Of a stretch of 64,000 nt of DNA, positions 5,154 to 62,131 are shown one piece after another. The stretch comes from Octopus sinensis (taxonomy: Eukaryota), in contig NC_043006.1 in assembly GCF_006345805.1 (NCBI RefSeq), positions 70,246,001-70,310,000 of the forward strand. Reading direction: 5' to 3'. Position 1 is the stretch's first letter. Every line of letters begins with the position of its first letter. A model generated the notes under the pieces. That model was given only the letters and a program-made list of their open reading frames with translations, made no database searches and was not told where the DNA came from. The translations under genes and the position numbers were made by a program.

Positions 5154-6207
5154 GTGAGTGTCTCATTGTAAACTGTTATTCATGAGCTTCTTTATATCTC
5201 TATTTCTGTATGAGTGTTCCTTTAACTGCGTTGAGTATGTGTATATACGAATATATATATACACACACACACATACATGAGATAATTTATGTCTCCTTTT
5301 ATGGAGACAAAAGGGTTTATAAGACTGCCAAGATAAAGTGCTCAAATGTAATTGAGACTGAAATAAAAAAACAAAAAAGAAATATTGATCAGAGAACAAA
5401 ACATCAAATTCGAGTCAACGACTTTATACATAACACCACGCCTCCAAACATTTGATCATATATAAATATCATCATGGCCTTTCAACTTATAAAGAATACA
5501 TATATAAAAAAACACAGGAGTTAAAAATATATATATGCACAAAAAAAAGATACAGATATATAGAACGGCCTATCAAGAAGAAATGTGACTGTGTGATAAG
5601 TAGCTTGCTTACCAACCACATGGTTCCGGGTTCAGTCCCACTGCGTAGCACCTTGGGCAAGTGTCTTCTACTATAGCCTTGGGCCGACCAAAGCCTTGTG
5701 AGCGGTTTTGTTAGGCGGAAACTGAAAGAAGCCCGTCGTATATATGTATATGTGTGTGTATACGTTTGTGTGTCTGTGTTTGTCCCCCAACATCGCTTGA
5801 CAATCGATGCTAGTGTGTTTACGTCCCCGTCACTTAGTGGTTCGGCAAAAGAGACCTATAGAATAAGTACTAGGCTTACAAAGAATAAGTCGTGGGGTCG
5901 ATTTACTCGTCGTATATGTGTTTGTATGTATGTGTGTGTGTGTAAAAACACTAATGCTAACTAGTATAACCATTAAAAGTGAAGTAACATTTCTTCCCGA
6001 GTCATGTGGACTCAGAGAGCCGGGTTTCCGGGTTTCCCAGTTTCCATGTATTCTTTTTTATCTCTTTACTTGTTTCAGTCATTTGACTGTGGCCATGCTG
6101 GAACTTTTTAGTCGAGCAAATCGACCCCAGGACTTATTCTTTGTAAGCCTATTACTATTCTATCGGTCTCTTCATACACACACACACCACACACACACAC
6201 ACACACA

Positions 6208-9960: not shown

Positions 9961-10276
9961 CCAACCGAACAGAGTGCTAGTATGTTTTTTTTTTAATTAT
10001 GGAAGGAGGAATCAGTTTTACAAGACGAAAGAAGAGATTAGGTTAGAAAAAGGACAGCACACCATTTACTCTTTTACTTGTTTCAGTCATTTGACTGTGG
10101 CCATGCTGGAGCACCACCTTTAGTCGAGTAAATCGATCCCACGACTTATTCTTTGTAAGCCTAGTACTTATTCTGTCGGTTTCTTTTGCCGAACCGCTAA
10201 GTCACGGGGAAGTTAACACACCAGCATCAGTTGTCAAGCGATGTTGGGGGGGGGGGACAAACACAGACACACAAAC

Positions 10277-10307
<31 letters not shown>

Positions 10308-10569
10308 TAAACGACGAGCTTCTTTCAGTTTCCGTCTACCAAATCCACTCACAAGGCTTTGGTCGACCCGAGGCTATAGTAGAAGGCACTTGCCCAAGGT
10401 GCTACGCAGTGGGGCTGAACCCGGAACCATGTGGTTCGAAAGCAAGCTACTTACCACACAGCCACTCCTACGCCTATTTGAAGATTTTGGCGGGGGTGGG
10501 GGGTCTTACATGAGATAGTTCGTCGGTTGCCTATCCTAATATTTCTTTCTGTTTCATATCTGTTGGCAG

Positions 10570-23498: not shown

Positions 23499-23583
<85 letters not shown>

Positions 23584-23791
23584 GTGTGTGTGTTTGCCCT
23601 GAATGTGCGATAGACACACGTGTGTTGTCTTCCACCATTTTTTCCCTTTCTTTATCCTTTCAGAAGAGCATATGCTCGAAACGTAGAAGACATTTCCTTC
23701 AGATTTTTCCCATTTCCTAAGCGTAAACATAAATCATTCTGCTTGTTACTTTTTCTTTTTTCTCGCCTTGTGCTATCTATATTTTTGCGCT

Positions 23792-23838
<47 letters not shown>

Positions 23839-24534
23839 ACACACACACACACACACATACACACACATATATATATATATACATACACGTTTTTGTTTTA
23901 GTCAGAATCTATATATTTAAACGTGTTTATGTATATGAATGTATGTATGCATACTTCTGTACATACATACACATATACATGATACATACATACACACATA
24001 CATGCATACATACATACACACACACGCGCACACACACGCGCACACATACATACATACATACACCACACATACATACACACATACATACATACATACATAC
24101 ATAGATACATACATACATACATACATACATACCTACATACATACATACATATATACATACATATATACATACATACATACATACACACACACATACACAC
24201 ACACATGCATACTTACAGACGTACATACGTACAAGCACACACACACACAATTTGACATATTCAGATTTGCGCACACACGTATATATTTTCCCATGTACAC
24301 GCGCCCATGTACATGCAAACACTCATACCCAATCAAGGATAAACACACACATACACAAACAAAGACAACATGTACCATTGTCATAGAATCACATGAAACA
24401 TCACCATACAATCACATGCTACATAGTCATACAACAGTATCAGACATCGTCGAACATGCAGTCATAACAAACATCGCCATGCAACAACCTCAAATAACCG
24501 CACCAAACATCATCACACAACCACATTAGATACC

Positions 24535-24767
24535 TATTTCTTTACTACCCACAAGGGGCTACACACAGAGGGGACAAACAAGGACAGACATAGGTATTAA
24601 GTCGATTACATCGACCCCAGTGCGTAACTGGTACTTAATTTATCGACCCCGAAAGGATGAAAGGCAAAGTCGACCTCGGCGGAATTTGAACTCACAACGT
24701 AACGCAGACGAAATACCGCTAAGCATTTCGCCCGGCGTGCTAACGTTTCTGCCAGCTCGCCGCCTTG
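24535..24767 (-). mobile_element. Family-A SINE with a 17-bp target-site duplication (CAACCACATTAGATACC)
   Basis: Identical 17-mers at 24518-24534 and 24768-24784. Confidence 0.88.
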
Positions 24768-25941
24768 CAACCACATTAGATACCATCAGACAGCCACAGC
24801 AAGCATTGTCACACAACTACATCAAACAAATTCACACAATTGCAATAAATATTGTTACGGAATCACCCGTCGTCGCCCGTCCCGAACGGCTCACACAAGT
24901 TCCGCCACGGAACCCAAAGAGGCGGAGAGAGGAGATACAGATAGATACTGCCACAACCTCAACAGCACAGAGATACAGAGGCACAACCCGAGATACAACC
25001 CAAAGAGGCACAGGCAACAGAGACACTGGCTTATATTCAACAACTACTAGTTTATATGACAATCAATTGCTACACATCAAATACATTTAAGGCAGACATT
25101 TAAAGGAAGACATGCACGTGACTACTCAATACATCATGCAACAGATCAACGCATAATACAACATCATTTCAAGAGTACACGTCCGAAGACAACAGTTCTT
25201 TAAAGTCTCTTTCTGAACATCACAGATAAAGTCACATCAACAAGTCCTTTACTCAATTCTGAACATAAATACCACAACTCGATAATCGACATATCGACAG
25301 AGTCCTTGACTGTTCTCTTCACTGTTCAATACACCGTGACACATATCAATGCACAACACATACCTCAATTCCTAATTGAATCTGCCAGTGTCCCATTCCT
25401 CTCAATCCTGCCAATCCTCTGAATACTGCCAAATCCTTCTGTACATATCCCTTCTGCATATTCCAATCGCTTGCTCCTCAAATCCCAAGATCCCTGCTGA
25501 TCTGTCCAAGATCCGTCTGTGTTCTTCCACGACCGCTCAACCGACCGCAAGATCCGTCTGTGTTCTTCGACGACCAACTACCAACTGCCCAGATCTCACT
25601 TCGTCTCTGTCCTTCTTCCACTCCCTCATCTCCCTCTGTCTATATCGCTCCTACCCTTTCTAACTGCTCTCTGATTCCTTACTCTATCTATATCGCCTCA
25701 ATCCCTTAGCCTCTCTATCTGTCCCTTACTGCTTATACTCTATCTCTATTTGCTCTCAGCCCTTAATCTGTCCCTTTTCTTTCACTTCTCACTGACCCTC
25801 TTATCAACCACACGAGGTCACAGGTCATTCCAAAACCCATTAGTCCTCCATTAGACAAAAGACTGTCACATTTCGCCCAGACATGCCGGAACCATAATTC
25901 TAATGTGGGTCACCAAGACTGCACTAGCTAAACTCATAACA

Positions 25942-25954
25942 CTACCCCCTACCT
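25942..25954 (-). promoter_or_regulatory. Polypurine tract AGGTAGGGGGTAG
   Basis: Immediately precedes the 3' LTR on the element strand. Confidence 0.8.
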
Positions 25955-25982
25955 AAGCTTTTGTCGACCCGACAAAAACATA

Positions 25983-27857
25983 CTAAACTTGCACCCCCGA
26001 GGGCGAGCTCCAGCAGACTCTCCAGGGGCTGGGGGTCCCCTTGTGTGGTTTCTCCTCCGGGGGTCTCACCTCCCACGGCCACCACTTCAGCACCAGCCAC
26101 AGGTTGGCACCTTCCCTCTGCGGCTTGGGCAATACCACCGCCAACGCCGCCAGGCTTCCTACTAGCCGCCTACAATAGGCGCACCGTCCGAGGAAGTTCC
26201 TCAAATCCCTCACACAGGAAGGGTCCGGCCAATCCTTCACAGTGGCCACCTTCCTCAGGGCTCTATAGCCGACGTAGCACCTTGCTGTACCATCCCCATT
26301 CCGCGCAACTATCGCCGACGACCAGGGACCATTCCGCTTTTCCACTGTTCCCCGTCGCCGATATCTCCTCTTGCGCTGCTGTACTGGGACCTTCCTCCGG
26401 CCTCGCTGCTTCCTCAAGCGACGACCGCCTTGGTCGACGAAACGTTCTGCCAGGTCCGTGCGACCAGCATCCAACAACCCTCGCGACCAACGTCCTGCAC
26501 TTTTCACCAACGGTTGCTTCTTCCGCAACTGCATCAGCGGACCACGATCTCCCTTAACTTCATCACTGCACCGGCAGAACTGACCCCGCCGCTGGTTTAC
26601 CGTCCGGCGCAGTTCCACGATTTGCCCTCTGCAAATCGCTTGCGCAGCCTTCAATAACTCGGCCGACCCAACCAGCGCTCTGTCAGCCTCTGCCTCCACC
26701 AGGGTCCAGCCGACCCTCAATTGAGCTCTTACTCCGCACTGCATGTCGGGCTCCACCGGCCCCACGCAACCATCAAATACAGAGCTCCCCCAAGTGCCAA
26801 CAAAGCACCAGCGACTCCTTGCGGACCGCTTCCTCAACTGCATCCGTGGGCCACCACCTCCTTCAACTGCGTTGCCGTATCGGCAGAACTGGCCCCAACA
26901 CTGGCCCGCCATCTGGCACGATTCCTCGATTTGCCTTCTGCAAATCGCCTGTGCCACTTCCAAAAGATCGGCCGACCCACCCAGCGCTCCACCAGCTTCT
27001 GCTTCCACTAGGGTCCACCCGACCCTCAATCGAGCTTTCACTAGGCACTGCCTGTCGGGCTCCACCGGCCCCAAGCAACCATCAACCACAAAGCTCACCC
27101 AACGCTGAAGCAGTCTTCCTGGTCTCGGTGGACCCACCACCGTTCGCAGCCGTCTCGCCTCGTCAACGGGCCTGGTCCTTTTCTTCACCAGCTTCCGTAC
27201 CGCAGGCCTCACAACACACACGCTCGGCCGCCAGTCCATCCACGCCTGTGGCCTCTCCACAGTGGGAACCATACAGTCCCTCTGGGCCCCAAGAGACAGG
27301 AGTCCAGACACCAAAGGACCCTCACACGGCACAACACCTGCCGCGACCATCACACACAGAGCCGGAACCTCGGATTCAGCGACATCCACCCCAGACCTCG
27401 CCAGCTCTTCGTCCCGAGCTCCGAGAGACAGGGGTCGAAATGCCAAGGGCCCCAGACACGGAACAACAGCATCAGCCATAACAACTTCAACAAGCCTTTT
27501 GGTTAATTCAACCTCTACGGGTTCCAAATCACAAGATTTCTTGGGTACAGCGTCACAAATTTCGGCAACCAACCCAGGTTCCGCCGATGCTTCGTTCGAC
27601 GAGCAATCTCTGTCCACAGGACCGTCGCTATCCCCGGTCCAACACCGATCCTCCAAAGCTGACCCATCCGCAACCTCAAGCTCCCGCTGATCTGCCCACA
27701 GGCCCCGTCGCCTCTTGTCCATCCTTTCCATGAACGCATCCGTCTGCGCCATCTGGCCCCTTAACATCTCCACAATCAGGGCAAGCGAAATCCCCTCGTC
27801 TCCGGTCTGACAGCCAGACAAATCCATAGCGAAAAAGAACCGATCGAAACGCAGCAA
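25983..27857 (-). CDS. 624-codon LTR-element ORF (first ATG at 27827), pol-derived chimera lacking the RT catalytic core
   Basis: PWSSAIV...DGTARCYVGYRAL (RT N-terminal-like) is joined directly to V.DWP.P..V.DLR.FLG.C.Y.RR (RT C-terminal-like). Internal duplications are present. Confidence 0.65.
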   Translation of the reverse strand: MLRFDRFFFAMDLSGCQTGDEGISLALIVEMLRGQMAQTDAFMERMDKRRRGLWADQRELEVADGSALEDRCWTGDSDGPVDRDCSSNEASAEPGLVAEICDAVPKKSCDLEPVEVELTKRLVEVVMADAVVPCLGPLAFRPLSLGARDEELARSGVDVAESEVPALCVMVAAGVVPCEGPLVSGLLSLGAQRDCMVPTVERPQAWMDWRPSVCVVRPAVRKLVKKRTRPVDEARRLRTVVGPPRPGRLLQRWVSFVVDGCLGPVEPDRQCLVKARLRVGWTLVEAEAGGALGGSADLLEVAQAICRRQIEESCQMAGQCWGQFCRYGNAVEGGGGPRMQLRKRSARSRWCFVGTWGSSVFDGCVGPVEPDMQCGVRAQLRVGWTLVEAEADRALVGSAELLKAAQAICRGQIVELRRTVNQRRGQFCRCSDEVKGDRGPLMQLRKKQPLVKSAGRWSRGLLDAGRTDLAERFVDQGGRRLRKQRGRRKVPVQQRKRRYRRRGTVEKRNGPWSSAIVARNGDGTARCYVGYRALRKVATVKDWPDPSCVRDLRNFLGRCAYCRRLVGSLAALAVVLPKPQREGANLWLVLKWWPWEVRPPEEKPHKGTPSPWRVCWSSPSGVQV

Positions 27858-27865
27858 TCAGGACA

Positions 27866-27883
27866 ATCCCACTTCTGACACCA
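27866..27883 (-). promoter_or_regulatory. Primer-binding site TGGTGTCAGAAGTGGGAT, complementary to the 3' end of tRNA-Leu(CAA)
   Basis: 18-mer starting 2 nt inside the 5' LTR; matches the known tRNA-Leu ...AUCCCACUUCUGACACCA end. Confidence 0.85.
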
Positions 27884-30015
27884 GTTGTTACGGAATCACC
27901 CGTCGTCGCCCGTCCCGAACGGCTCACACAAGTTCCGCCACGGAACCCAAAGAGGCGGAGAGAGGAGATACAGATAGATACTGCCACAACCTCAACAGCA
28001 CAGAGATACAGAGGCACAACCCGAGATACAACCCAAAGAGGCACAGAGGCAACAGAGACACTGGCTTATATTCAACAACTACTAGTTTATATGACAATCA
28101 ATTGCTACACATCAAATACATTTAAGGCAGACATTTAAAGGAAGACATGCACGTGACTACTCAATACATCATGCAACAGATCAACGCATAATACAACATC
28201 ATTTCAAGAGTACACGTCCGAAGACAACAGTTCTTTAAAGTCTCTTTCTGAACATCACAGATAAAGTCACATCAACAAGTCCTTTACTCAATTCTGAACA
28301 TAAATACCACAACTCGATAATCGACATATCGACAGAGTCCTTGACTGTTCTCTTCACTGTTCAATACACCGTGACACATATCAATGCACAACACATACCT
28401 CAATTCCTAATTGAATCTGCCAGTGTCCCATTCCTCTCAATCCTGCCAATTCCTCTGAATACTGCCAAATCCTTCTGTACATATCCCTTCTGCATATTCC
28501 AATCGCTTGCTCCTCAAATCCCAAGATCCCTGCTGATCTGTCCAAGATCCGTCTGTGTTCTTCCACGACCGCTCAACCGACCGCAAGATCCGTCTGTGTT
28601 CTTCGACGACCAACTACCAACTGCCCAGATCTCACTTCGTCTCTGTCCTTCTTCCACTCCCTCATCTCCCTCTGTCTATATCGCTCCTACCCTTTCTAAC
28701 TGCTCTCTGATTCCTTACTCTATCTATATCGCCTCAATCCCTTAGCCTCTCTATCTGTCCCTTACTGCTTATACTCTATCTCTATTTGCTCTCAGCCCTT
28801 AATCTGTCCCTTTTCTTTCACTTCTCACTGACCCTCTTATCAACCACACGAGGTCACAGGTCATTCCAAAACCCATTAGTCCTCCATTAGACAAAAGACT
28901 GTCACATTTCGCCCAGACATGCCGGAACCATAATTCCAATGTGGGTCACCAAGACTGCACTAGCTAAACTCATAACAATATCATCACAGAACCGCTTAAC
29001 CATTGTTCTTCCATATCAGTCATTATCACGCAGTCGTATCATACATCTCCACACAAGTATATCACATATCACCAGACAATAGCCTCAACCTCGCCACACA
29101 ACACCCTCACAGAACCACAACAAACGTCGTCACACAACAACATCAAACAGCATCACTCAATTTCAGTAAACATCACCTCACAACCGCGTACGATTTCATC
29201 ATGCGACAGTATCAGCCACCTTCATACAATTATATCATACAGATATATCAAACATCACCGGACAATCGTATCAATATCACCACGCAACTACTTCCCAGAA
29301 CAATATCAAACATCATAACACAACTACATCAGACATCATCACACAACCACACCAGGCATCATCACTCAACTACCTCAAATAACATCTCACAATTGCTATA
29401 AACATCACCACACAACCGTATGCGGTTTCATCATACGACTTTAACAATCATATCTTCGCGCAATCATATTCACTTATATCAAACATCACCAGAGAATCGC
29501 ATCAATACCACCACTCGGTTAACTCACAGAGGCACAACGAACATCATCACTCAACCATACGAAACTTCATCACACAGCTACATCGAACAGCATCACATAA
29601 TTACATTAAACATCATCACGCAACCATATCAAGCATTACCTATTTCTTTATTGCCCACAAGGGGCTAAACACAGAGGGGACAAACAAGGACAGACATAGG
29701 TATTAAGTCGATTACATCGACCCCAGTGCGTAACTGGTACTTAATTTATCGACCCCGAAAGGATGAAAGGCAAAGTCGACCTCGGCGGAATTTGAACTCA
29801 CAACGTAACGCAGACGAAATACCGCTAAGCATTTCGCCCGGCGTGCTAACGTTTCTGCCAGCTCGCCGCAACACCCACACAACCGTCACAAATAACTATA
29901 ACCATAGATACCAACCTGACTTTTGACAACAACACCGGCGTTTCCCTACCACAATACCATGTTTATTTGCATTGTAAATTGTGGCTTGTGCAGTTTTTGT
30001 TTCACAGTCACATAC

Positions 30016-41300: not shown

Positions 41301-41362
41301 CAGTCATTGATTAGCGAACAGTTACTGGCTACTGAATGTCATTAGTATGTAGAGAGTTTATA

Positions 41363-41755
41363 GGCGTAGGAGTGGCTGTGTGGTAAGTAGCTTGCTTACC
41401 AACCACATGGTTCCGAGTTCAGTCCCACTGCGTGGCACCTTGGGCAAGTGTCTTCTACTATAGTCTTAGGTCGACCAAAGCCTTGTGAGTGGATTTGGTA
41501 GACGGAATCTGAACGAAGCATGTCGTATATATGTATATATACATATGTGTGTGTATATATATGTTTGTGTGCCTGTGCTTGTACCGCCAACATCACTTGA
41601 CAACCGATGCTGGTGTGTTTACGTCCCCGTAACTTAGCAAAAGAGACCGATAGAATCAGTACTAGGCTTACAAAGAATAAGTCCTGGAGTCGATTTGCTC
41701 GACTAAAGGCGCTGCTCCAGCATGGCCACTGTCAAATGACTGAGTAAAAGAGTAG
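41363..41755 (+). mobile_element. Full-length tRNA-derived SINE family B (GGCGCAGGAGTGGCTGTGTGG head, internal microsatellite); more than 15 copies or fragments, e.g. 6055-6420(-), 10075-10475(-), 46745-47130(-), 55391-55710(+), 61438-61855(+), 63395-63810(-)
   Basis: A/B boxes, conserved body and GGCGGTGCTCCAGCATGGCC...GACTGAAAC tail recur. Confidence 0.9.
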
Positions 41756-46307: not shown

Positions 46308-47153
46308 CGCTAACCACTACACATTCTTTATTTTCTCTCCTTGTTCCTTTCTGTGTTCCTTTCTCTGGAAGAGCGTAGACTCGAAACATTAAAGAATTTT
46401 TCACTTCCCGAGCATTATACTAATACATGTTTGTTGTCTACACCACCTGTTTTCGTCTTTTGTTGTTTTGTTTTGTTTTTTTGTTGTCAATTCTCCCCCT
46501 GACCGCATGTGTACCGTTGGCGATTTTTTTCCCTCTGTCTTCCCTTCTCTGGATCTTTCCTTCTCCTATGTTTCCGACGAAGAGCTCCGCTCGAAACGTT
46601 AAACCCTCCTTCTTTCCCTCTTTTCTGAGCGTCCAATAATACTATATTTGTTCCACGTCCTCGCGTTGCTGTGTTTTTTTTGTGTTTTCGTGTTTGGATT
46701 AACTTTATACATATATATATATATATGTTTCTCTTTCTCTTTTTCTCTTTTACTTGTTTCAGTCATTTGACTGCGGCCATGCTGGAGCACCGCCTTTAAT
46801 CGAGCAACTCGACCCCGGGACTTATTCTTTTGTAAGCCCAGTACTTATTCTATCGGTCTCTTTTTTGCCGAACCGCTAAGTGACGGGGACGTAAACACAC
46901 CAGCATCGGTTGTCAAGCAATGCTAGGGGGACAAACACAGACACACACATATATATATACATAAATCCGACAGGCTTCTTTCAGTTCCCGTCTACCAAAT
47001 CCACTCACAAGGCATTGGTCGGCCCGAGGCTATAGCAGAAGACACTTGCCCAAGATGCCACGCAGTGGGACTGAACCCGGAACCATGTGGTTGGTTAGCA
47101 AGCTACTTACCACACAGCCACTCCTGTGCCTATATATATATATGTCTTTTAGT

Positions 47154-47246
<93 letters not shown>

Positions 47247-55353: not shown

Positions 55354-55393
<40 letters not shown>

Positions 55394-55796
55394 CGCAGGA
55401 GTGGCTGTGTGGTAAGTAGCTAGCTTACCAACCGGGTTCAGTCCCACGGCGTGACATATTGGGTAAGTGTCTTCTACTATAGCCTCGGGCCGACCAAAGT
55501 GTTGTGATTAGGTAGACGGAAACTGAAAGAAGCCCGTCGTATATGTATACATGTGTGTGTGTGTGTGTCTGTGTGTGTACCTTTGTGTGTCTGTGTTTGT
55601 CCCCCACCATCGCTCGACAACCGATGATGGTGTGTTTACGTCCCAGTAACTTAGCAATTCAGCAAGAAGAGACCGATAGAATAAGTACTAGGTTTAAAAG
55701 AATAAGTCCTGATGAGTAAGAGTATATAATATATAATATAATATATTATATATAGATATATATATATATATAGATATATATATATATATATATATA

Positions 55797-61364: not shown

Positions 61365-61439
<75 letters not shown>

Positions 61440-61619
61440 TGCAGGAGTGGCTGTATGATAAGATGCTTGCTTACCAGCCACATGGATCCAGGTTCAGTCT
61501 CACTGCGTGGCACTTTCGGCAAGTGTCTTCGACTATAGCCTCGGGCCGACCAAAGCCTTGTGAGTGGATTTGGTAGACGGAAACTGAAAGAAGCCCGTCG
61601 TATATGTGTGTGTGTGTGT

Positions 61620-61651
<32 letters not shown>

Positions 61652-62131
61652 CGTGTGTCTGTGTTTGTCCCCCCAACATCGCTTGACAACCGAGGCTGCT
61701 GTGTTTGCGTCCCCGTAACTTAGCGGTTCGGCAAAAGAGACCGATAGAATAAGTACTAGGCTTACAAAGAAGAAGTCCCGAGGTCGATTTGCCCGATTAA
61801 AGGCGGTGCTCCAGCATGACCGCAGTCAAATCACTGAAACAAGTAAAAGAGAGAGTATATATATATATATATACGACGGGCTTCTTTCAGTCTCCATCCA
61901 CCAAATCCCCTCACAAGGCTTTGGCCAGCTCGAGGTGATATAGTAAAAGACACTTCCCCAAGATGTCATGCAGTGGGAACCGAATCCAGAACCATGTGGC
62001 AGGGAGGCAAGCTTCTTTCCACGCAGCCACACCTTCACCTATGAGATGAGGAAAGAAAATTGAACCAAAACCGTAATCGATATTGTGCCTAAGCGAAACC
62101 GCGCAAAGCCAGTACCGTGTGAGTATAAGTG

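Follow-up and report, generated by a model that had tools for sequence, protein, structure and literature searches.

Among long terminal repeat (LTR) retrotransposons, the non-autonomous ones are commonly regarded either as RNA parasites without coding capacity (TRIM, LARD) or as elements coding for Gag only (TR-GAG). In the mouse, the gag-pol fusion of the IAP 1-delta-1 element acts in cis for retrotransposition, and gag and pol are provided in trans by full-length relatives, as stated in the part of PMC6466679 concerned with this element (citing Saito et al. 2008, Genome Res 18:859). In sugar beet, 15 of 115 families retain partly decayed remnants of reverse transcriptase (RT), RNase H, integrase or a chromodomain, often with no traceable autonomous partner, according to the section of PMC13570524 on such remnants. 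For Octopus vulgaris, nine recently active Ty3-like families averaging ~4 kb per copy were reported, a fraction of 147 copies, and the open reading frame (ORF) analysed here is not described there (PMC13282606). The present analysis concerns a stretch of 64,000 nucleotides of O. sinensis (assembly GCF_006345805.1, contig NC_043006.1, positions 70,246,001 to 70,310,000; hereafter the window), which contains an LTR retrotransposon at positions 24853-28977 on the minus strand (4,125 bp). No description of its family was found in the literature, and the family may constitute a large part of the Ty3-like elements reported as recently active in O. vulgaris. The reading favoured here, and held to be rather probable, is that of a young non-autonomous Ty3/gypsy-derived LTR retrotransposon whose ORF protein would help the copying of its own RNA, likely as a cis adaptor by analogy with the mouse element.

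The interior of the element (1,943-1,944 nt) was found to be almost filled by a frame of 624 codons without a stop (25983-27857, minus strand), exactly as noted in the first-pass annotation of the window. The frame opens right after a TGA located 4-5 nt past the 19-nt primer-binding site (PBS). Counted from its first ATG, the ORF comprises 614 codons and a stop (25983-27827, minus strand), and the stop lies ~40 nt ahead of the 3' LTR. The remaining two frames of the sense strand carry 30 and 20 stops, compared with 0 in the 624-codon frame. G+C makes up 59% of the interior and G alone 39% of its sense strand, and the first-pass annotation had allowed that a GC-rich composition might explain the lack of stops. 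That explanation failed: in 2000 dinucleotide-preserving shuffles of the interior, the longest open frame in any of the six frames was on average 238 codons and at most 590 codons. Composition alone, therefore, does not explain the 624-codon frame.

The frame was compared in eleven more copies (L001-L011), obtained from the contigs behind eleven Octopus proteins, giving twelve copies together with that of the window. The host is Octopus, and these relatives are located in assemblies of O. vulgaris and O. sinensis. The interiors and LTRs were compared as they stand (BLAST, MAFFT), and broken copies were translated piecewise. The ORF was intact in L009 (LTR identity 98.4%), in the O. sinensis copy L002 (97.5%) and, with a stop 9 codons early, in L003 (99.5%). 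It was open in L008 (99.8%) except for a 17-nt deletion at codon ~596, and single lesions were detected in L001 (99.3%; a 14-nt deletion) and L010 (96.9%; a frameshift). L005 (96.7%) had two stops and no frameshift, and L006 (99.1%) had two frameshifts. In L007 (94%), and in L004 and L011, where LTRs were not found, the ORF was truncated or rearranged.

Among six close copies, 157 substitutions were polarised, and the same mutation types replayed at random positions gave an expectation of 6.3 stops. None was observed up to codon 605 (P about 0.001), and the other two frames contained 18 and 13 polymorphic stops. Indels with a length that is a multiple of three made up 17 of 23 in the ORF compared with 9 of 58 in the corresponding LTRs (Fisher P=1e-6); with the slippage-prone acidic region left out, 9 of 15 ORF indels were in frame (P=0.001). 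Every indel common to at least two copies was in frame, and all the frame-breaking ones were private to single copies, so the random frameshifts named beforehand as a possible refutation were not seen. In L002, a +1/-1 pair ~24 nt apart cancels out and the frame is restored. Most of the loci were found via gene models holding only the first 120-170 residues, by which the state of the remaining ~450 codons is not biased. Restricted to these codons, by our own rescaling and tally, ~4.5 stops were expected and 0 observed, and 7 of 13 indels were in frame. Copies found via the N-terminal ~150 residues and having the remaining ~450 codons intact or nearly so were L003, L009 and L008, and also L001 with one lesion. 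Subfamilies with ~20% divergence and unrelated LTRs keep the frame as well. In replicating lineages the ORF is kept open over nearly the whole distance between the first AUG of the transcript and the polypurine tract (PPT), and the proposal that the frame is selected for translatability or for a protein function was borne out by the stop deficit and the excess of in-frame indels.

The selection on the amino acid sequence was distributed unevenly. The comparison of dN/dS among copies, which had been suggested as a check, gave a divided result. Pairwise maximum-likelihood omega values of the six close copies were 0.82-1.07, indistinguishable from 1, and dN/dS within the subfamily was similar to that of shifted-frame controls. 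Between subfamilies omega was 0.59 (LRT, likelihood ratio test, P=9e-5). In residues 501-570, the RT remnant described below, values of 0.25, 0.25 and 0.17 were determined in three pairs without a common copy (P=7e-4, 7e-4 and 2e-3), although these pairs share deep branches and the P values are not fully independent. The dS of this segment, 0.305, was no lower than elsewhere; therefore, the constraint acts on the protein and not on the RNA. Residues 1-60 gave an omega of 0.37 when pooled and 0.38-0.78 in the three pairs. The second unit of the long internal repeat, with omega ~0.9, is free to vary, and the range for this unit and the arginine-rich linker was 0.86-1.8. Amino acid selection is concentrated in residues 501-570 and, more weakly, in the first 60 residues, while the long middle is nearly free. 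Due to the values of 0.59 between subfamilies and 0.17-0.25 in the RT remnant, a protein function is somewhat better supported than translatability only.

The ORF product consists, in order, of an N-terminal region known from Octopus only, a protease tail, two dUTPase-like units, an arginine-rich linker and an RT fingers-thumb fusion. The constrained RT remnant (residues 501-570; 26118-26327, minus strand) is a fingers hairpin fused to a thumb helix, located by its omega values and by its match to the Ty3 RT. Residues ~440-537 align with the linker and the first fingers strands of gypsy RTs (..SPWxSPxVLVxKKDGxxRFCVDYRxLNxVTxKD..), and residues 525-567 with the thumb (..KVxAVxxWPxPxxxxxLRSFLGxxxYYRRF..). 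With the Ty3 RT (4OL8, E=2.8e-4), the best match among solved structures, residues 97-135 and 274-312 were matched and the part between them was missing. The two HMMER stretches overlap at query positions 525-537, i.e. at the deletion junction RKVATVKDWPDPS (26217-26255, minus strand), which fits both ..LNxVTxKDxYPLP.. of the fingers and ..KVxAVxEWPxP.. of the thumb. Since both alignments overlap on this sequence, the deletion joined two short similar motifs. In comparison with P0027, P0030 and P0037, 142-144 residues are gone at the junction, essentially all of RVT_1 (palm) including YxDD. The same fingers-thumb junction is present in L004. The earlier description of an RT N-terminal motif fused to an RT C-terminal motif without YxDD was thus upheld against both Ty3/gypsy pols and the Ty3 RT structure. 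The arginine/lysine-rich linker, with 16 R/K in 31 residues (26352-26444, minus strand), was aligned to ..TGxxRPxKQxPRRxP.. of gypsy pols and derives from the segment immediately before RT.

The 309-bp in-frame duplication was found as described before, with repeat unit 1 at 26829-27102 and unit 2 at 26520-26793 (minus strand, offset 309 bp, 79% identity). These middle repeats are not rearranged RT. The 103-residue unit (GPVEPD..RVGWTLVEAEA) is homologous to a ~95-residue domain that about 100 of 151 gypsy pol matches carry between protease and RT, and both this homology and an AlphaFold model point to a degenerate dUTPase-like domain. The model of unit 1, built with the pol-domain alignment, had moderate confidence (pLDDT 69); its top 50 matches in the PDB were all dUTPases, with TM scores of 0.48-0.66 and weak E-values of 0.01-0.07. 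We take the unit to be a predicted dUTPase-like domain in a degenerate state, and the units of the window have lost a nearly invariant Asn and several hydrophobic positions of the domain. As a separate observation, the ~95-residue domain between protease and RT, with a predicted dUTPase-like fold, occurs in Ty3/gypsy pols of many animal phyla (proteins P0016-P0151). P0022, P0025 and P0142, which consist mainly of this domain, gave no match in a Pfam search.

Upstream of the units, the sequence RDCMVPTVERPQAWMDWR (27228-27281, minus strand) appears to represent the last residues of a protease. It was matched by eye to ..DQCILSLDYLASMACQ.. of P0142 via ..DNCIVPIGKKPQASMACQ.. of P0010/P0023. A stretch considered as the protease active site, LLDAGRTDL, was rejected, as it aligns to a conserved segment, ..DLGxTxxxxHxIxT.., that immediately precedes RT. 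The first ~180 residues, including the 44-residue duplication, matched Octopus proteins only, so the view of the ORF as entirely pol-derived had to be given up. The best conserved part of this Octopus-specific region is the N-terminal module of residues 1-60 (MDLSG..ISLALIVEMLRGQ..; 27648-27827, minus strand). A profile search with residues 1-200 returned O. vulgaris proteins only and no Gag; the region may possibly be of Gag origin, eroded past detection. The 44-residue (132-bp) in-frame duplication, with cores VVPCLGPLAFRPLSLGA and VVPCEGPLVSGLLSLGA, is located at 27285-27467 on the minus strand. This duplication, too, had been reported before and is real, but in the window only its 51-nt core is recognisable (38 of 51 nt identical at an offset of 132 nt). 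It is clearer in L005 and L007, where 80-82% identity extends over ~96 nt, and the older L004/P0023 lineage has a single copy and lacks the duplication.

In the ORF, CCHC knuckle, YxDD, D[ST]G and HHCC motifs were not detected, and a Pfam search with the whole ORF gave no match even at E=10, in agreement with the earlier statement that a gag knuckle, RNase H and integrase are lacking. Because a protease active site, RT palm, RNase H and integrase are all missing, the element is non-autonomous and cannot copy itself. Several copies are nevertheless young, with LTRs 99.1-99.8% identical, and its classification as a non-autonomous element was confirmed. With every enzyme lost, the element must depend on an autonomous Ty3-like helper acting in trans for Gag, protease, RT/RNase H and integrase.

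In RTs, the primer-template is contacted by the fingers hairpin and thumb helix. The retained fingers and thumb pieces, together with the arginine-rich linker, suggest nucleic acid binding. According to the favoured reading, the element would make a protein aiding the copying of its own RNA: by analogy with the IAP fusion, the nascent protein would bind the RNA encoding it via the arginine-rich linker and the RT pieces, and would bring this RNA into helper particles or onto the helper polymerase. An upstream stop or frameshift would remove the constrained module at codons 501-570; the location of this module downstream would account for ~500 poorly conserved codons being kept in frame. A more specific form of this proposal is tentative, and we regard it as possible rather than probable. 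It would be a minimal 'hitch-hiker' protein, of a type so far undescribed among Ty3/gypsy parasites and having neither capsid nor enzyme, in which the sole conserved parts, the N-terminal module and a 70-residue fingers/thumb clamp, would be joined by a long, freely evolving, arginine-rich and duplicated spacer. Such a protein might dock the parasite RNA or its tRNA-primed PBS on the helper polymerase or particle in cis. If true, a non-autonomous LTR element would compete for its helper by a protein as well as by RNA signals.

Several results weigh against a protein acting for its own RNA. The comparison covers only twelve copies, and all except that of the window were found via annotated gene models, which require an open N-terminal stretch. 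The N-terminal region has no recognisable features of Gag. The omega of the six close copies is close to 1, shared and singleton changes have the same S:N ratio, and the deep branches common to the three pairs reduce the independence of the low values in the RT remnant. L006 (5977-9419), with LTRs 99.1% identical and no LTR indels, has frameshifting deletions of 16 nt and 1 nt, which means either that broken copies are still mobilised for at least one round or that the decay was unusually fast. As this copy is young and yet broken, the ORF is no absolute requirement for a single round of copying. An autonomous partner was not detected either: pol-bearing relatives were absent from the window and the eleven loci, and the best pol matches were only 35-46% identical and came from arthropods, amphioxus and nematodes.

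The near-neutral omega of the young subfamily, where stops and frameshifts are missing, would be expected if translation itself were selected and not its product. A ribosome reaching the vicinity of the PPT might keep the RNA stable or in the cytoplasmic pool that is packaged by the helper, for example by avoiding the decay set off by an early stop and a long 3' UTR. The end of the ORF only ~40 nt before the LTR, the AUG-free leader, and the restriction of the sole lesions of otherwise intact copies (L003, L008) to the last 10-18 codons, a position that would be tolerable under this mechanism, are in line with this explanation. It predicts, however, an omega of ~1 throughout, and the values of 0.17-0.25 in residues 501-570 with normal dS and 0.59 for the whole ORF between subfamilies deviate from that. 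As the full cause it is considered unlikely; protection by translation and a cis-acting protein may both contribute. Constraint at the RNA or DNA level, such as a packaging signal, a structure or an internal promoter with the open frame as a by-product, is improbable. In the same copies, the LTRs have diverged by 8-22% and the interior by ~5%, 2-4 times more slowly, the dS of the interior (0.05-0.07) is below the LTR divergence, and the PBS and the palindrome with the PPT form conserved non-coding blocks, all of which would suit such constraint. It would not, however, tell indels of 3n from others, nor substitutions creating stops from the rest; the most constrained segment has a normal dS and only a low dN, and the differences between subfamilies are in excess at third positions (82/103/124).

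The frame might also be a passive relic, open due to recent descent from one open master and to a G-rich, A/T-poor sense strand on which stops are rare. The 39% G of the sense strand, open stretches of up to 307 codons on the opposite strand, the difference of only ~5% between the closest copies and the choice of the window for its long ORF agree with this. Against it stand the 30 and 20 stops of the other sense frames and the shuffles, none of which attained 624 codons. The stop deficit and the in-frame indel excess were gauged against the actual substitutions and the LTR indels of the same copies, subfamilies with ~20% divergence and unrelated LTRs still keep the frame, and the fusion junction is common to a lineage with only 52% protein identity (L004/P0010). 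This explanation is thereby already largely refuted, and we regard it as very improbable. Selection at the level of the host, in which host genes would take their promoters and first coding exons from the copies and the N-terminal coding part would be kept, is given the least credence of all. In O. vulgaris, the start of at least 26 gene models lies within the ORF of the element, often at Met26 (MAQTDAF..). GT donor sites are present in the ORF at 27338, 27369 and 27397 of the window, and also in L001, L003 and L008-L011. Nine inspected models pass into unrelated host sequence after ..VMVAA, ..AESE or ..EELA (CAG|GT, GAG|GT or GAG|GT, respectively). The chimeric models include a RING/death-domain protein and, from cluster membership, an apparent choline-transporter-like protein; they are either real LTR-driven transcripts or annotation artefacts. 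The copies, on the other hand, are young, dispersed, flanked by target-site duplications and structurally polymorphic, the chimeras differ in their donors and downstream genes, and selection for a first exon would not keep 450 codons past the donors open. The 'hypothetical protein' models of O. vulgaris that start in the element, at least 26 including chimeras with real genes, merit an annotation flag.

The structural features of an LTR retrotransposon were all present in the window element, namely direct TG..CA LTRs, a short target-site duplication (TSD), a PBS by the 5' LTR and a PPT by the 3' LTR. The 5' LTR (1,092 bp, TG..CA) is located at 27886-28977 and the 3' LTR in element sense (1,089 bp, TG..CA, determined by blastn against the other LTR) at 24853-25941, both on the minus strand. 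They are 99.6-99.9% identical (99.6% by blastn) and differ by one substitution and two small indels. The TSD, ATAT, is found at 24849-24852 and 28978-28981, the same 4 bp at both ends of the element. These values support the earlier characterisation of the element as young. An age of roughly 10^5 years may be estimated, because one substitution in ~1,090 nt of LTR was read on the time scale of O. vulgaris repeats, where a Jukes-Cantor distance of 0.09 corresponds to ~25 My (PMC13282606).

The PBS TGGTGTCAGAAGTGGGATT (27865-27883, minus strand) is a 19-mer starting with TGG, 2 nt past the 5' LTR. The exact 19-mer is present in six further copies and near-identical in the rest. We take it to be the complement of the 3' end of an animal tRNA-Leu(CAA); a tRNA gene against which it could be checked was found neither in the window nor in the copy loci. 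The PPT AGGTAGGGGGTAG (25942-25954, minus strand), read directly, adjoins the 3' LTR and is kept in all full copies. Between the ORF stop and the PPT lies a conserved palindrome, TTTGTCGGGTCGACAAA (25957-25980, minus strand; read directly), which is nearly invariant in eight copies, among them subfamilies with an unrelated LTR. The 5' LTR contains TATAAA at 28086-28091 (minus strand) with an AUG-free leader downstream. In the window, the last ATG ahead of that of the ORF lies 21 nt before TATAAA, and the 282 nt separating the two are free of ATG; by our own arithmetic from the LTR composition, ~7 would be expected there. Six of nine further copies checked, including L005, have this arrangement in full, with an AUG-free stretch of 244-303 nt that starts a little before TATA. 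L007 has an AUG-free stretch of 265 nt, but with TATA upstream of the last ATG, and the stretches in L006 and L010 are shorter (184 and 64 nt, respectively). The ATG of the ORF is the first after the TATA box, with G at -3 and G at +4, and its context TTCGCTATGG is kept in nine of ten copies checked, L007 having TTCGCCATGG.

Relatives were identified by an exhaustive protein search, as a first, word-indexed search gave only one chimeric gene model. Two classes of matches resulted. The first were short proteins with 52-98% identity to parts of the ORF, and all of those looked up were 'hypothetical proteins' of O. vulgaris or belonged to the O. sinensis assembly. The second were Ty3/gypsy pol polyproteins of many phyla, matching query positions ~437-540 and ~525-568 and carrying RVT_1, RT_RNaseH, Integrase_H2C2 and rve domains. 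By sequence similarity, a Ty3/gypsy (Metaviridae) descent of the RT part is indicated. The protease tail, dUTPase-like unit and RT pieces survive in the order expected for PR-RT-RH-INT (protease, RT, RNase H, integrase), and RNase H and integrase are gone. L004, the oldest-looking relative, keeps after the thumb a stretch matching pol positions 760-877, between RNase H and integrase (L004:16768-17127), and the family may have shrunk stepwise from a longer deletion derivative.

The copies differ markedly in their LTRs and repeats. The LTR of L005 (6911-7947) cannot be aligned with the window LTR at 27886-28977, as a forced alignment gave 52% identity, i.e. a random value. L005 shares with the window the PBS, the ORF (80-86% nucleotide identity), the palindrome and the PPT, and has TATA and an AUG-free leader at the same relative position. 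Either replacement of the LTR by recombination or a very rapid turnover of LTRs is indicated. L010 shares its N-terminal type with L005, its ORF being kept except for the one frameshift. The repeat unit occurs once or twice per copy, the difference always being 309 nt, and is single in three copies (L006, L010 and L004). The two units are 87.8% identical in L005 (8764-9383) compared with 79% in the window (26520-27102), which suggests repeated loss and gain of units or conversion between them, probably by template switching.

Some further observations were made on the mutations and the surroundings of the element. In the ORFs of the window copy and L001-L009, A>G changes on the sense strand (0.107 per A) exceeded T>C changes (0.036 per T; P=2.5e-4), and G>A and C>T were equal. 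The A>G excess in the LTRs had the same direction and was not significant (P=0.09). The direction of the asymmetry is that expected from reverse transcription of A-to-I edited RNA, an origin that is unproven but of note in an octopus. G exceeds C on the sense strand in the interior (39% compared with 20%) and in the LTR (31% compared with 14%). Each LTR holds a 41-nt tandem duplication of two copies with 84% matches (25507-25585 and 28543-28621). The element sits within an array of a 23-nt CA-rich motif with higher-order periods of ~230 and 974 bp (24359-24850 and 28982-29870); with the element taken out, 24505-24763 and 29608-29869 are 96.6% identical. Microsatellites of (ACAT)n, (CA)n and (GT)n lie directly upstream (23500-24250). 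An interspersed repeat of ~350-450 bp has many copies in the window on both strands (5585-5909, 10064-10477, 41359-41743, 46745-47170, 55354-55762, 61403-61875 and others). A tandem cluster at L001:35260-36230 matches it at 82-91% identity, and the repeat is probably a SINE-like element that is abundant in the octopus.

In comparison with known systems, the octopus element shares features with several and agrees fully with none. Autonomous Ty3/gypsy elements such as Ty3 have the RT fingers and thumb with which those of the ORF align, and a TSD of 4 bp is likewise shared; however, the octopus element is without the protease core, RT palm, RNase H and integrase. A domesticated retroelement gene is a single fixed locus without LTRs or TSD and under purifying selection, whereas the octopus family has many dispersed copies with LTRs and TSDs, structural polymorphism and several broken members. 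LARD and TRIM elements likewise have LTRs, a PBS and a PPT without enzymes and are mobilised in trans, as described in the relevant part of PMC13570524. The 4,125 bp of the octopus element are just over the size of >4 kb given for LARDs there, but the LARD interior is non-coding and the octopus interior is one ORF. TRIMs, under ~1-1.5 kb and with a non-coding interior, differ from it in both length and its 614-codon ORF. The plant TR-GAG elements are also non-autonomous LTR elements with one ORF and no enzymes, and are called semi-autonomous in the corresponding section of PMC13570524. They are defined there by a GAG ORF, whereas no Gag signature was detected in the octopus ORF by Pfam, CCHC or profile search and its recognisable parts come from pol. 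The POL remnants of sugar beet are described as decayed and patchy, with no uninterrupted frame mentioned, at least in the part of PMC13570524 dealing with them, and those of the octopus form one open, selected frame. The octopus family presents one long frame composed of remnants of enzymes, and selection is measurable both for this frame and for a small RT-derived module.

The closest analogue is mouse IAP 1-delta-1, in which, as far as the account in PMC6466679 extends, an internal in-frame deletion likewise resulted in a single, translated fusion ORF of a non-autonomous LTR element. In the octopus ORF, the corresponding junction was found at residues 525-537, within a frame uninterrupted from the first ATG. 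The two differ in several respects. IAP is an endogenous retrovirus and the octopus element belongs to Ty3/gypsy. The IAP fusion keeps a large recognisable Gag and more of pol, whereas the octopus ORF has no recognisable Gag and a far more eroded pol, and has internal duplications unlike IAP 1-delta-1. The IAP element has a known, nearly identical partner, and its cis effect was demonstrated experimentally; for the octopus element, cis action would follow by analogy only. If true, such action would offer a testable answer to how retrotransposon parasites out-compete their helpers, and would extend the sole experimentally known case, that of mouse IAP 1-delta-1, to an invertebrate Ty3/gypsy lineage.

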